A DNA stretch of 32,000 nucleotides, from positions 30,001 to 62,000 of the forward strand of contig NW_008806300.1 of NCBI RefSeq assembly GCF_000400465.1, in the 5' to 3' direction. Source of the DNA: Wallemia ichthyophaga EXF-994. Lineage: Eukaryota; Fungi; Basidiomycota. The first letter of the stretch is position 1. Each line of letters starts with the position of its first letter. Shown here in pieces: positions 13,401-16,396 of the stretch. Made by a program: the position numbers and the translations under genes. The notes beneath the pieces are model-generated. The model searched no databases and was not told where the DNA came from. It saw only the letters and a list, made by a program, of their open reading frames with translations.

Positions 13401-16396
13401 GACAAAGTCAGACAATTATTATTTGGATAGGAGATGGTTATCTAGAAATGCAACCTAGATCTATTAATGCCAGATTTTCTATTGTTCAATCAATTATTCA
13501 CAATGATTACATTCATGAATTAGCATATCAATTTCTATTCTTTGCTCAATATACATTAAATGAGAGTAAGTACTTAGATCCTAGAACTTCTAAGGTATAT
13601 CACATTGTTAAACTTATAACTAACGTAGATGAATTATTCACTGAATCTTACTACATGTTCTACGTAGATGGAGTAAAAATTATTCCATCCGATCTTTCAC
13701 TACTTACTCCTTATGCCTTAGCTCATGTTATTATGTGTGACGGTTCTTTCCACAAACATACTGGATCGTTATACTTATGCACAGATGGACTCACAGTTGA
13801 AGATACTACATACCTTAAATCTACTTATGGAGTATCTTACACTCTTCAGAAGTCACCTAGTAAATTAGGTAAAATTGGTCTATCTAAGCGTATTTACATT
13901 CCTCGTCATAGTGTGGATACAATTAGAAAGGCTGTGTTACCATACATGGTGCCATCTATGCTATATAAGCTAGGCATTTAATTGATTTTTACATCCCTCA
14001 TACTAGTGATAGTATAAGCAACTTTTCTCTGATTTATTATAAATTTTTAATACCCAAATTACAGTCGATCTCTCAGATTTTATTTTTATAAAATTCACAA
14101 GGCCTTCTATGAAGAATAAACTAAATTATTAATATATTTAAATTAGGGATGTTTATTACTGAGAAGGTACATGGTCATATAGAACTGCTCTAAATTATAA
14201 ATAAATAATTTAGATGCTATATGGATTTGAGAGGAGGGTTCTTCGGACACCCTGAGGTTTACATTATGATTCTACCAGCATTCGGAATTGTAAGTCATGT
14301 TGTATCAACATTCAGTGGTAAACCAATCTTCGGATACCTTGGAATGGTTTACGCTATGTTCAGTATTGGAATTTTAGGGTTCATTGTATGGTCGCATCAC
14401 ATGTACAGTGTTGGTCTGGATAAATTAAAATCATTAATTTTCACTAAGAGATTAAAAGAATTAGAAGAAAATGTTAAGAAGAAATTTCTAAGAGCTATGA
14501 TTTTAGTAAAGGTCTTGATTACAATTACGACAAAGTCAGACAATTATTATTTGGATAGGAGATGGTTATCTAGAAATGCAACCTAGATCTATTAATGCCA
14601 GATTTTCTATTGTTCAATCAATTATTCACAATGATTACATTCATGAATTAGCATATCAATTTCTATTCTTTGCTCAATATACATTAAATGAGAGTAAGTA
14701 CTTAGATCCTAGAACTTCTAAGGTATATCACATTGTTAAACTTATAACTAACGTAGATGAATTATTCACTGAATTTTACTACATGTTCTACGTAGATGGA
14801 GTAAAAATTATTCCATCCGATCTTTCACTACTTACTCCTTATGCCTTAGCTCATGTTATTATGTGTGACGGTTCTTTCCACAAACATACTGGATCGTTAT
14901 ACTTATGCACAGATGGATTCACAGTTGAAGATACTACATACCTTAAATCTACTTATGGAGTATCTTACACTCTTCAGAAGTCACCTAGTAAATTAGGTAA
15001 AATTGGTCTATCTAAGCGTATTTACATTCCTCGTCATAGTGTGGATACAATTAGAAAGGCTGTGTTACCATACATGGTGCCATCTATGCTATATAAGCTA
15101 GGCATTTAATTGATTTTTACATCCCTCATACTAGTGATAGTATAAGCAACTTTTCTCTGATTTATTATAAATTTTTAATACCCAAATTATAATAATGTTA
15201 AAACTTAACATAACGACTTTACGAGAAAGACCTTAAAATAAGGTTAATATAAAGTCTAGATTATTAAATAAACTTTATTTAATAAAACTGGTTGACACAA
15301 GAGCTTACTTTACAGCTGCAACTATGGTTATTGCTGTCCCAACAGGGATTAAAATCTTCAGTTGGTTAGCGACACTATATGGAGGATCAATTAGATTCAC
15401 TACTCCAATGTTATTCACATTAGGATTCCTATTATTATTCACTATTGGAGGACTTACAGGAGTTGTGCTAGCTAATGCTTCAATGGACGTTGCATTACAC
15501 GATAAATAAATATAATAACTATTATGTGTCGTGTTTAATAAAAATAAATGCTTATATTATAATTAACAATTATACTTAATAAAAGTTATAATTAATTGTA
15601 GATATTTTCTATAAGCAAAGTATATCTTTTAGAGACTATTAATAAGATATAGTCCAATTTATAAATTAAGATATTTATATCGAAAAGACATACTATGTCG
15701 TAGCACATTTCCACTATGTGTTATCAATGGGAGCTGTATTCGGATTATTTGCCGGATTCTATTATTGGACACCTAAATTAATTGGACAAACATTCAACGA
15801 ACAACTAGGTAGAATTCACTTCTGGACATTATTCATTGGAGTTAACTTAACTTTCTTCCCTTTTATTTCTAAAATTTAAACAAAATTGGGGGAAGTAAAA
15901 AATAGCTATATGCGTGAATTTTTATTAAATGTATATATATATATTATTAAGTAAAGTAATACGCAGGATTGATATATCCTCAAAGATCTTACACTAATAA
16001 AAGATTAGATCTACTTTCATTAAGTTATTTCATTTAAACATAAATTTCATTTTAAATAATTAGTGACACAGAATGCAACACTTTCTTGGCCTACAAGGTA
16101 TGCCGCGTAGAATTGTAGATTATCCTGATGCCTTTGCAGGATTTAATGCAATTTCATCATTTGGATCATTAGTATCTGTAGTAGCAACATTGTTATTCTT
16201 ATACATTATCTACGATATCTTTGCTAACGGAGAAGAAGTTTCTGCTAACCCATGGGCTGTGCCTGCTTTCTTCCAATCAACACCATTAGGTTATGCTGGA
16301 ATTGGACACGATGTAACTGTAGCACCTTCATTAGAATGGTCAGTATCATCACCAACACCTTTCCACGCATTTGATAACCTACCGGTACAATCATAA
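4427..16396 (+). CDS. cox1: Cytochrome c oxidase subunit 1. Exons: 4427-4641, 4902-4929, 5103-5143, 6302-6406, 6619-6715, 7679-7904, 8408-8592 (or third copy 14237-14421), 15291-15503, 15688-15861, 16076-16396; 1605 nt, 534 aa
   Basis: Joined exons give continuous Cox1 ([52 protein letters not shown]). Every intron ends in G and the total is divisible by 3. Internal exons are repeated by the tandem duplications. Confidence 0.95.
4642..4901 (+). mobile_element. cox1 intron 1, group IB-like, ORF-less, 260 bp (after CDS nt 215; common site 212)
   Basis: Exon ends ATGGT, IGS gctatga, P4 ttgct/agcag, P7 GAATA/TATTC, terminal G 4901. Confidence 0.85.
4930..5102 (+). mobile_element. cox1 intron 2, group IB, ORF-less, 173 bp (site 240)
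   Basis: Exon ends TTTGGT; core agagacta...ttatagtcc; terminal G; next exon resumes NYFVP. Confidence 0.9.
5144..6028 (+). pseudogene. Exon-fused two-motif LAGLIDADG endonuclease/maturase, frameshifted near 5780 (copy 9845-10729)
   Basis: Motifs [10 protein letters not shown] and [10 protein letters not shown]. The C-terminal part ([15 protein letters not shown]) is in another frame opening at 5783; reading TGA as Trp does not rescue it. Confidence 0.85.
5144..6301 (+). mobile_element. cox1 intron 3, group IB, with LAGLIDADG ORF (site 281)
   Basis: Core cagagacttt...aagataaagtcc at 6210-6254. Boundary ATGGC|...G|GTTCCCT; a 1-nt shift gives the same protein. Confidence 0.85.
6407..6618 (+). 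mobile_element. cox1 intron 4, group IB, ORF-less, 212 bp (site 386)
   Basis: Exon ends TGGACGCT; core aaagacta...atatagtcta; terminal G; resumes A-TAT-CCA. Confidence 0.88.
6716..7678 (+). mobile_element. cox1 intron 5, group I, with free-standing LAGLIDADG ORF (after CDS nt 486; standard-type site 483)
   Basis: 8-bp P1 ttctaggt/gcctagaa with U.G; 8-bp P10 ttcatcgt/gcgatgaa; P7 GATTA(6802-6806)/TAATC(6829-6833). Confidence 0.9.
6863..7633 (+). CDS. Two-motif LAGLIDADG homing endonuclease, intact 256 aa (copy 11564-12334)
   Basis: VVGLLLSDA and LAHLIMGDG motifs, LCTDNF; own ATG, not fused to the exon (TAG at 6728-6730). Confidence 0.9.
   Translation: MTSLIVYFNNVKPIAIKRWWNVNKSIFPPTNCTSIVVWNGMNTTGLTVGLPKFTLFLKLSQALTYYQYSTVVGLLLSDAILRVHKLPTARLIFKQSIVNFKYFLFVWSILGCLCSSMPYLEYTKLQGKIFPTLILSTRAYASLGDLYTLFYNNGKRVVPGDIYDLINPVSLAHLIMGDGQASTQKYKGLTLCTDNFSNYDVVRLMNVLKIKYDLNTSLQFAAGKPRIYFYGKEMDKLFAITYLHMAPSMMYKIASR
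7905..8407 (+). mobile_element. cox1 intron 6, group ID, ORF-less, 503 bp (site 709)
   Basis: Splits the Trp codon T|GG; ID-type core atcgctacagactgggtcactagtgggtatctgaaacgatgcttgatgtacagtcga. Confidence 0.9.
12932..15187. repeat. Tandem duplication, 1128 bp unit (12932-14059 / 14060-15187): end of intron 6, exon 7, most of intron 7 (third copy overall)
   Basis: ORFs recur at +1128; 3 C/T differences (13247/14375, 13647/14775, 13790/14918). Confidence 0.97.
14422..15109 (+). pseudogene. Exon-fused LAGLIDADG ORF, frameshifted before its first motif (copies 8593-9280, 13294-13981)
   Basis: The exon frame stops at 14586. A degenerate first motif (TIIIWIGDG) and [10 protein letters not shown]...LCTDGF lie in the +1 frame, which is closed upstream by stops. 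Confidence 0.8.
14422..15290 (+). mobile_element. cox1 intron 7, group I (IA-like core), 869 bp (after CDS nt 897); truncated copies at 8593-9344 and 13294-14059
   Basis: Exon ends CTGGAT; core acgacttta...ataaagtcta; terminal G 15290; resumes VDTRAYF. Confidence 0.88.
15504..15687 (+). mobile_element. cox1 intron 8, group IB, ORF-less, 184 bp (site 1107)
   Basis: P1 acacgat/gtcgtgt, P4 tgcttata/tataagca, P7 GACTA/TAGTC, terminal G; resumes [10 protein letters not shown]. Confidence 0.9.
15862..16075 (+). mobile_element. cox1 intron 9, group IB-like, ORF-less, 214 bp (site 1281)
   Basis: P1 cttccct/ggggaag, P4 tgcgt/acgca, P7 GATCT/AGATC, terminal G; resumes QHFLG. Confidence 0.88.

Follow-up and report, generated by a model that had tools for sequence, protein, structure and literature searches.

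A 184-nt group I-derived intron in cox1 without the P3 and P8 helices

Can a group I intron shed P3 and P8 and still be removed from its transcript? To our knowledge, every model of group I introns, whether it is built on structure or on biochemistry, counts P3-P7-P8 in the catalytic core, and every group I structure solved to date has P3 and P8 within that conserved core. Engineered P3/P8 deletions in group I introns are strongly deleterious, so that activity without P3 and P8 is unproven. The question is raised by intron 8 of the cox1 gene in the window (the whole 32,000-nt stretch of DNA analyzed here), hereafter the mini-intron, from which P8 and most of P3 appeared to be missing in an initial annotation. 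The mini-intron and its elements are the following.

15504..15687, + strand: mini-intron (cox1 intron 8), 184 nt, with the final G at 15687.
15498..15503, + strand: P1 strand in the 5' exon, CACGAT, with its final U in the U.G wobble at the 5' splice site; the partner strand is GTCGTG (15528-15533).
15504..15522, + strand: L1, the P1 loop, 19 nt, which in full-size homologues is occupied by a LAGLIDADG ORF of ~700 nt.
15523..15533, + strand: internal guide, consisting of the P10 strand TATGT (15523-27) and the P1 strand GTCGTG (15528-33); GTGTCGTGTT is common to canonical homologues.
15534..15549, + strand: joiner TTTAATAAAAATAAAT, A-rich and single-stranded, in the normal place of P2, the 5' strand of P3 and J3/4.
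15550..15616, + strand: P4 (GCTTATA 15550-56 / TATAAGC 15610-16) around P5 (ACAATTA 15566-72 / TAATTGT 15593-99).
15617..15629, + strand: P6 hairpin AAAG-TATAT-CTTT, with a compensatory change from G-C to U-A in L087.
15630..15638, + strand: R element, J6/7 TAGA and the P7 5' strand GACTA; TAGAGACTA is the same as in canonical same-site homologues.
15639..15643, + strand: spacer TTAAT, 5 nt, which stands for J7/3, the 3' strand of P3, J3/8 and all of P8.
15644..15655, + strand: S element, J8/7 AAGATA and the P7 3' strand TAGTC followed by C; AAGATATAGTCC is invariant in 29 canonical homologues.
15661..15678, + strand: P9 hairpin ATAAAT-TAAGAT-ATTTAT, the stem of which is kept in three species whereas the loop differs.
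15688..15692, + strand: 3' exon strand of P10, ACATA, which pairs with TATGT.

The protein reading frame fits these boundaries, with ...DVALHD encoded before the intron and TYYVV after it (ALHD/TYYVV). Translation of the unspliced sequence across the 15504 boundary yields K and then a stop (AAA TAA), in agreement with the earlier statement that the retained intron would halt Cox1. The P7 region (15634-15654) reads GACTA-TTAATAAGATA-TAGTC: the two strands, placed by the initial annotation at 15634-15638 (GACTA) and 15650-15654 (TAGTC), are 11 nt apart (TTAAT and AAGATA), with TTAAT as the sole spacer.

A gap this short might have arisen if the assembly had dropped or collapsed P8, as an AT-rich hairpin, along with the 3' strand of P3. 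The window assembly is indeed visibly faulty, with many near-exact tandem duplications (periods 4701, 1128, 2119, 1929, 1724, 1244 and 1704), the junctions of which are missing in other assemblies. One of these duplications is exact (15147-17265 = 17266-19384, 2119 nt) and contains a further copy of the intron. The window has two occurrences of the 22-mer GACTATTAATAAGATATAGTCC, compared to 0 expected (100 shuffles).

17623..17806, + strand: second intron copy, within the exact 2119-nt tandem duplication.

None of 12 independent Logan assemblies contains the junction of this duplication, and 11 of them have the unduplicated path. The second copy is most likely an assembly artefact, and the occurrence of the short linker in both copies, which had been offered as support, reduces to a single duplication confined to the assembly of the window. 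The mini-intron itself is another matter: the same 184 nt are found, without a single difference, in 12/12 Logan short-read assemblies from different sequencing runs, and this identity among independent assemblies implies that no P8 hairpin was collapsed at 15630-15655. Moreover, a P7 loop of 10-11 nt is also present in two diverged species. Loss of the helices during assembly is thus effectively refuted.

These two relatives, L082 (Nad5 95% identical) and L087/L088 (~88% nucleotide identity), both retain the mini form, with P7 loops of 11 nt and 10 nt in L082 and L087, respectively. Named basidiomycetes are more distant, with a Nad5 identity of only ~60% (Apiotrichum, Cryptococcus, Microbotryum, Phanerochaete, Russula). 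The assignment of well-formed P1, P10, P4, P6 and P7 helices by the initial annotation holds in all three species, although with three sequences the support from covariation is thin. All six pairs of P1, including the terminal U.G, are kept, as is the P10 pairing ACAUA/UAUGU next to the 3' end (...AAAAG/ACATA), to which L082 adds a sixth pair through changes on both strands. P4 (7 bp), P5 (7 bp) and P6 (4 bp) are completely paired throughout, with one A-U to G.U change in P4. P9 has an AU-only stem and a variable, non-GNRA loop. The R and S elements, TAGAGACTA ... AAGATATAGTCC, match the consensus of 29 same-site homologues; in L087, J8/7 is AAAATA instead of AAGATA, a form that is also encountered in the canonical relatives L166 and L140. 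Judging by sequence, the group I features present in the mini-intron are the U.G in P1, the guide, P10, the terminal G, P4-P6, P7 and J8/7.

The other part of the core is missing. P2 is absent, and no hairpin is possible within the joiner that occupies its place (15534..15549). P8 is absent as well, as the initial annotation had it, with 5 nt between P7 and J8/7 compared to 39-42 nt in most homologues. Neither of the family P3 strands, TTGCTA/TAGCAA, is present in the mini-intron, and its sole possible P3 is a 4-bp pairing of UUAA(15535-38) with UUAA(15639-42), which neither L082 (3 of 4 pairs) nor L087 keeps intact. The reported loss of P3 therefore stands, but "most of P3" is an understatement because P3 is absent in its entirety. 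Two more candidate substitutes, AUUAA/UUAAU, which uses the last base of P7, and pairing of the spacer with sequence 3' of P7, are not conserved. The spacer itself is TTAAT in the window, TAAAT in L082 and ACT/TACT in L087, without conserved pairing.

Common occurrence of such a short linker among homologues would have made the mini-intron unexceptional. Introns at the same cox1 site were identified in 69 metagenome loci and are complete in 46. The short linker is not shared by these introns of other fungi: the distance from P7 to J8/7 is 39-42 nt in 40 and greater in five, so that 45/46 have at least 39 nt, and the remaining one, L028, is without the GACTA form. The P8 helix of this family shows covariation, with 88% of the cells paired and 3/5 pairs changing on both sides. 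In a covariance model built from 29 canonical cores, 45 positions are reduced to 10 nt in the mini-intron (16.9 bits, E ~0.001 in a 621-nt search), and MAFFT and the covariance model agree in aligning the mini-intron with one clean gap. Because GTGTCGTGTT, TAGAGACTA and AAGATATAGTCC are shared with the homologues, the mini-intron and the canonical introns are of common descent. The same site, the collinear guide, and the R and S elements would assign the mini-intron, on sequence grounds, to the subgroup IB lineage of cox1 site 1107, although it is missing the subgroup IB features of a LAGLIDADG ORF in L1, P2 and a GNRA-capped P9. The insertion site, HD/TYYVV, we take to be that of Saccharomyces cerevisiae aI5-beta (in yeast exon coordinates). 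The canonical group IB introns at this site share with the mini-intron the guide GTGTCGTGTT, J6/7 with P7 (GTAGAGACTA), J8/7 with P7' (AAGATATAGTCC) and a short 3' tail that contains a P9 hairpin and closes with a terminal G. They differ in their size (842-2729 nt), in the LAGLIDADG ORF that their L1 encloses, and in the presence of a hairpin for P2, of the P3 pairing TTGCTA/TAGCAA and of a P8 that covaries. The ORFs of the homologues are in frame with the upstream exon and lie 5' of the internal guide sequence.

The absence of core helices could signify that the mini-intron is a dead element in a non-functional cox1, its core having decayed through disuse, and in the homing-cycle view, loss of core helices is the outcome expected of neutral decay in an ORF-less intron (PMC8393795). 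The host gene speaks strongly against this reading. In 235 flanking cox1 codons, the three species show 63/50/66 synonymous differences compared to 2/2/1 non-synonymous ones, that is, purifying selection acts strongly on the exons to either side of the intron. This implies that cox1 works and that the intron must be removed, which the initial annotation had made conditional on a functional gene. The remaining intron core is more conserved than third codon positions (divergence of ~6-9% of positions compared to 19-25%), and each contig has only one cox1. A dead intron is accordingly a very remote prospect. Given its persistence in three species with a functional cox1, the mini-intron is almost certainly still spliced. 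The spliced Cox1 protein has no match at 100% identity in the protein collection searched, the best match across the junction being 89% identical.

How would such an intron be removed? Our preferred answer is that the mini-intron is probably a reduced group IB descendant that lost the ORF, P2, P3 and P8 and is spliced by group I chemistry, presumably with the help of protein. The ancestor is a LAGLIDADG-bearing group IB intron at HD/TYYVV, a site that is occupied in many fungi, and the losses are drastic, comprising the ORF in L1, P2, both P3 strands and all of P8. P7 has thereby become a plain hairpin, with a loop of 10-11 nt composed of a variable 4-5-nt spacer and the conserved J8/7 strand; the spacer may just span the distance between the end of P7 and the start of J8/7. 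The elements retained are the chemically essential ones, namely, P1 with the U.G, P10, an A-rich J3/4-like joiner, P4-P5, P6, J6/7, P7 with its guanosine-binding pairs, J8/7, P9 and the terminal G. Removal from the cox1 pre-mRNA would follow the two-step, guanosine-initiated group I reaction, and the scaffold role of P3-P8 (and P2) would be taken by one or more proteins, probably nuclear-encoded. In L082, the mini-intron is the only intron left in cox1 and no cox1-intron maturase exists, which points to a nuclear factor.

Alternatively, P3-P8 might have been replaced rather than lost, either by a weak local P3 (UUAA/UUAA, or the spacer paired with sequence 3' of P7) or by a helper RNA acting in trans. 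The UUAA(15535-38)/UUAA(15639-42) helix can form in the window, and in L140, a locus of another fungus considered below, the spacer GAAAT is complementary to ATTTC right after P7. Trans-assembled group I introns split in L8 are known, and one helper RNA has been hypothesized (PMC3873408). Against a local P3, the UUAA/UUAA pairing fails in both L082 and L087, and the three species have three spacer sequences with no co-changing partner; a helper RNA would be without an anchor because both P3 strands and P8 are absent. We regard replacement, in either form, as unlikely.

Still less probable is removal by another mechanism, for example cleavage by a protein endonuclease followed by ligation, or bypass at translation, with the group I features being vestigial. 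This explanation is favored by the absence of core helices regarded as necessary for catalysis, but not by the pattern of conservation: all three species keep the elements that group I chemistry specifically requires (the U.G in P1, the guide to both exons, the terminal G, J6/7, P7 and J8/7), and the parts that drift are the spacer, L1 and L9. With its 184 nt and its in-frame stops, the insert far exceeds known bypass elements. Group I splicing by a reduced intron remains the reading we favor.

Searches for comparable introns identified one close analogue. L140:3308-3449, from another fungus, is a 142-nt intron at a different cox1 site with a near-identical design: a 16-nt joiner, a GCT-led P4, a P6 hairpin and AGAGACTA-NNAAT-AAGATATAGTCC. 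It was the only real analogue among the 74 matches to a looser pattern, AGAGACTA N0-14 AGATATAGTC, a number close to the chance expectation (18 fixed bases, 596 Gb). Of the rejected matches, the one in L136 corresponds to P8 in a bacterial group I intron of the ordinary type, and that in L096/L027 is the 3' side of P8 in a larger intron. The exact mini core gave 0 matches in genome contigs, and the S element combined with the exon pattern gave 0 matches in viral contigs. When 0.52 Mb of fungal mitochondrial loci were screened by script for a hairpin P7 followed by J8/7, AT-richness made the output too noisy, and the credible G/C-containing matches were the known ones only; L021 looks like a case of an ORF in L8. 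Rfam gave no group I match, either in the window or in 4000-20200 at E<=10, a result that is uninformative because the canonical introns of the gene are missed too. RF00028 did recover the bacterial intron in L136. Mini-introns that escape detection of this type are likely to be mis-annotated in fungal mitogenomes.

A second short intron lies downstream in the same gene.

15862..16075, + strand: last cox1 intron, 214 nt, at FFP/QHFLG, with P1 CTTCCCT/GGGGAAG, ending in G.

It shares the design of the mini-intron, with a hairpin-like P7 formed by GATCT (15985-89) and AGATC (16007-11) around a 17-nt loop, TACACTAATAAAAGATT, and its core is identical in L087. The segments CACTAA/TTAGTG of this intron pair in the window but not in L087, and the pairing was treated as due to chance.

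No precedent emerged from the literature searched, whether for group I introns without P3 or without P8 or for a class termed "smallest" or "derived". RNAweasel has "Group I derived" classes that are left undefined (PMC13123237). These RNAweasel/MFannot classes (A, B1, B2) resemble our case in being a bin for group I introns of fungal mitochondria with non-standard cores, and definitions of them were not found (PMC13123237).

Small size as such is not new among group I introns, as the following comparisons illustrate. The tRNA-Ile intron of Azoarcus is a small natural self-splicing group I intron of ~205 nt. The mitochondrial group I introns of Isoetes are 237-328 nt long (PMC2731911). Like the mini-introns, those of Azoarcus and Isoetes have no ORF, trimmed peripheral elements and a similar length, but they possess a full P3-P8 core, and the mini-introns are shorter (184 nt, and 142 nt in L140) because core helices are missing. 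In deletion work reported for the Tetrahymena and T4 td introns, partial activity survived removal of the periphery and even of P4-P6, whereas P3-P7-P8-P9 had to stay. The engineered Tetrahymena and T4 td ribozymes address the same question of which helices are dispensable, and the mini-intron gives a different answer: P4-P6 and P7 remain, and P3 and P8 are gone. Conceptually, the nearest parallel is with the degenerate group II ("group III") introns of euglenoid plastids, which are stripped of most core domains and are still removed in vivo (PMC8393795). These belong to a different ribozyme class, and the same source describes no group I equivalent (PMC8393795).

The mini-intron and its analogues might represent an unrecognized "mini group I" class of fungal mitochondria (~140-215 nt) in which P2, P3 and P8 are gone, P7 is a hairpin with a loop made of the spacer and J8/7, and splicing occurs only within a dedicated protein or RNA-protein scaffold; we put this forward tentatively, as a possibility that is less likely than not to apply in full. 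The recurrence of the design at a different cox1 site in L140 hints that the mini form may be able to move into further sites, with reverse splicing as one conceivable route. If the class is real, it would be the group I counterpart of the euglenoid group III introns. A natural intron without P3, P8 and P2 that is nevertheless removed would lower the known minimum of group I architecture, and the mini-intron would provide a natural system for studying what the P3-P8 scaffold contributes and how proteins replace RNA structure. Such a shift from RNA to protein would be the same transition that has been proposed for group II introns and the spliceosome.

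The window is AT-rich mitochondrial DNA (~30% G+C) encoding nad5, nad4L, cox1, atp8, cox3, a tRNA cluster and rnl, and the standard genetic code seems to apply because the tRNA-Trp anticodon is CCA and tryptophan is encoded by TGG. Nad5 shares only ~60% identity with named basidiomycete proteins, and 95% and 91% with the closest relatives, which come from read and metagenome assemblies; the source is taken to be a basidiomycete-like fungus on a deep branch. Near-exact tandem duplications occur with periods of 4701, 1128, 2119, 1929, 1724, 1244 and 1704; once these are removed, cox1 contains a 24-nt mini-exon and nine introns, of which intron 8 is the mini-intron analyzed here.

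Features of the window
4644-9345 = 9345-14046; 12932-14061; 15147-17265 = 17266-19384; 19842-21548; 23822-27569: examples of near-exact tandem repeats
4906-4929: cox1 mini-exon, 24 nt (PALMGGFG), between introns of ~260 and 173 nt
4930-5102: cox1 intron 2, tiny (173 nt), with a clear P8 (ATTATTATT/AATAATAAT)
15504-15687: mini-intron, 184 nt, between ...DVALHD and the next exon; read-through gives Lys, then a stop
15862-16075: last cox1 intron, 214 nt, at the FFP|QHFLG site

The 40-mers spanning five of the duplication junctions (periods 4701, 1128, 2119, 1704 and 1929) occurred in none of 12 independent Logan assemblies of this locus, 11 of which contained the unduplicated paths. One duplicated exon copy carries a Leu/Ser change (GILGF vs GISGF). 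The duplications look like mis-assembly, not biology. The initial annotation cited the presence of the intron in both copies as support; these copies (15504-15687 and 17623-17806) are the halves of one exact 2119-nt duplication and are not independent, because the junctions are missing from Logan and unduplicated paths exist. The intron itself is a different matter: 12 Logan contigs from different sequencing runs carry the 184 nt without a single difference, which speaks against a collapsed hairpin and makes an assembly artefact a negligible prospect.

The helices that the initial annotation described as well formed (P1, P10, P4, P6 and P7) can all be read in the sequence, as can P5 and P9. 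Pair conservation was followed in two related species with the same mini-intron: L082 (Logan ERR12743351), with a 95% identical Nad5 and the gene order of the window, and L087/L088 (an ENA metagenome and Logan ERR3209984), with ~88% nucleotide identity.

Elements of the mini-intron and their conservation across the three species
P1: CACGAU/GUCGUG, terminal U.G; 6/6 pairs invariant
P10: ACAUA/UAUGU; five pairs invariant, a sixth gained in L082 with both strands changed
P4: GCUUAUA/UAUAAGC; 7/7 pairs, one A-U to G.U change
P5: ACAAUUA/UAAUUGU; 7/7 pairs
P6: AAAG/CUUU; 4/4 pairs, one compensatory G-C to U-A change
J6/7: UAGA
P7: GACUA/UAGUC; invariant
P9: AUAAAU/AUUUAU
3' end: G

The P7 strands are separated by exactly 11 nt (UUAAU + AAGAUA), as originally claimed, and P2 is missing, with 16-22 unpaired A/U-rich nt between the guide and P4. 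The predicted structure is energetically reasonable, with a constrained minimum of -26.1 kcal/mol vs -29.6 for the free fold. All three species keep the hairpin-like P7 and its 10-11-nt loop, while each has a spacer sequence of its own: the 200-nt version in L082 reads GACTA-TAAAT-AAGATA-TAGTC and the 194-nt version in L087/L088 reads GACTA-TACT-AAAATA-TAGTC. Only one P3 can be proposed in the window, UUAA(15535-38)/UUAA(15639-42); of its four pairs, three are broken in L082 and two in L087, and the three-species comparison yielded no pairing partner changing in step with the spacer. For these two reasons we conclude that P3 is lost altogether and not just reduced, so the earlier statement that most of it is lacking holds for the absence and understates its extent. 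The same two observations count against a cryptic P3; that P3-P8 is cryptic or supplied in trans is unlikely, if still the most credible of the rival readings.

Metagenome contigs were scanned for AAGATATAGTC, 10-40 nt, G|ACNTAYTAYGTNGT, a pattern that leaves the P7-J8/7 region unconstrained. Among the 69 matching loci, 46 allowed complete introns to be delimited (842-2729 nt), all at the HD|TYYVV site and with a LAGLIDADG-type ORF inside L1, in frame with the upstream exon. Between GACTA and AAGATA, 40 of the 46 have 39-42 nt and four have 62-200 nt; L028 lacks the GACTA form, and the nominal 7 nt in L027 is counted from a second GACTA inside a long P8, the true R element lying ~100 nt upstream. 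These canonical group IB homologues, with their P3, P8 and L1 ORF, thus do not share the short linker of the mini-intron, and the second condition that the initial annotation set for its own refutation does not hold. The GC-rich cox1-intron segment of L027, a metagenome locus, also occurs in L096, a contig listed under Candidatus Glomeribacter gigasporarum (a bacterial Gigaspora endosymbiont) that is probably host mitochondrial DNA in a bacterial assembly.

In the canonical family, P3 (TTGCTA/TAGCAA) directly precedes P4 (ACGGTG), and P8 folds as a 5-7-bp stem capped by a UUAAGU-like loop. When 29 distinct 3' cores are aligned, pairing reaches 88% in P8, where three pairs change on both sides, and 98% in P9, where all six covary. 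MAFFT places a single clean gap of ~38 nt in the mini-intron, between GAGACTAT and (T)AATAAGATATAGTCC. A covariance model of these 29 cores matches 15620-15693 with 16.9 bits and replaces 45 positions between the P7 strands with 10 nt, which bears out the proposed absence of P8. Common descent is the simplest reading, because GTGTCGTGTT, TAGAGACTA and AAGATATAGTCC are common to the mini-intron and the canonical family. In L166, the next-closest relative found, the intron is canonical, with an ORF, P3, P8 and AAAATA as J8/7, so the mini form of this intron is confined to the three-species clade.

The intron would have to be removed if cox1 is functional, as the initial annotation reasoned: unspliced RNA encodes a protein ending before the HFHY haem ligands. 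Across 235 codons of three flanking exons, the species pairs differ by 63, 50 and 66 synonymous vs 2, 2 and 1 non-synonymous codons, which indicates strong purifying selection on cox1 in all three lineages. The core of the intron, P4 through P7', shows differences at ~6-9% of positions vs 19-25% at third codon positions, and L1, L9 and the spacer vary without evident constraint. Given this selection and the low variability of the core, a dead intron in a non-functional cox1 is very improbable. A junction-spanning spliced Cox1 protein above 89% identity was not found in the protein collection. In L082, the closest related species, cox1 (L082:7513-9317, minus strand) has lost all its other introns and has no intron-encoded maturase; the mini-intron is the sole survivor. 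If intron loss proceeds via spliced cDNA, this lone survival is odd and might inform the mode or efficiency of splicing.

The last cox1 intron has a similar design, with P1 (CUUCCCU/GGGGAAG), P4 (GCGUG/UACGC), P6 (AGGAU/AUCCU) and a terminal G. Its P7 strands, GAUCU (15985-89) and AGAUC (16007-11), lie just 17 nt apart (UACACUAAUAAAAGAUU), too close for a P8 between them, and a convincing P3 was not found either. The core of this intron is identical in L087, and the whole intron is missing from L082. Small size alone does not explain helix loss, because cox1 introns 2 (173 nt) and 4 (212 nt) are canonical, both with P8 and intron 4 with a clear P3. A group I-like 3' core (UUAGAGACUU...AAGAUAAAGUCC; 20.7 bits with the family model) also lies at 19878-19963 (duplicate 21582-21667), in the cox3/tRNA-His spacer with no interrupted gene evident; this core could represent either an unrecognised gene or a free-standing intron remnant.

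As read directly from the sequence, the mini-intron architecture occurs outside the three-species clade as well, in L140 (FNAW01000012.1), a 35% G+C contig of the actinobacterial assembly 'Blastococcus sp. DSM 44205' that is apparently fungal mitochondrial contamination; its Cox1 is ~59-74% identical to that of L082 across aligned segments. A 142-nt intron (L140:3308-3449) at a different cox1 site, FTIGG|(L)TGVV, comprises a guide, a 16-nt joiner, P4 (GCUG/CAGC), P5 (GUUUAUAU/AUAUAAAC), P6 (AAGUUAUA/UAUAACUU) and the 3' core CAGA-GACUA-GAAAU-AAGAUA-UAGUCC. The reading frame calls for C in place of U just ahead of the 5' splice site, where it faces the guide A (apparent C.A vs U.G), and the family covariance model gave this intron no score. 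The J8/7 variant AAAATA, in place of the usual AAGATA, is found in the L087 mini-intron (~2635-2707) and in canonical introns at the same site in L166 (~2190-2205) and L140 (~4995-5010), so the conserved J8/7 G is not invariant in this lineage; because the canonical L166 intron carries it, the variant cannot by itself be counted as a defect.

Full-text literature searches found no description of a natural group I intron without P8 or P3. A 2021 review of organellar introns lists degenerate group II ('group III') introns and no group I equivalent (PMC8393795); whereas the euglenoid-type 'group III' introns are degenerate group II introns, the mini-intron would be a reduced group I intron. RNAweasel has classes named 'Group I derived (A, B1, B2)' (PMC13123237), and we do not call the mini-intron categorically new because the definitions of these classes were not found. 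From its sequence, the mini-intron is best described as group IB-derived without two defining core features, P3 and P8. The parts kept (the substrate helices P1 and P10, the P7 guanosine site, J6/7, J8/7, P4-P6 and the terminal G) would carry the group I chemistry, and those lost (P2, P3 and P8) would be scaffold. On established group I structure, splicing would be ordinary and guanosine-initiated, with the scaffold supplied by protein; the 4-5-nt spacer may serve only to lead from P7 into J8/7, across a gap that P3 normally bridges. Removal of the insert by a non-group-I route is improbable, and the mini-intron probably works like a group I intron.
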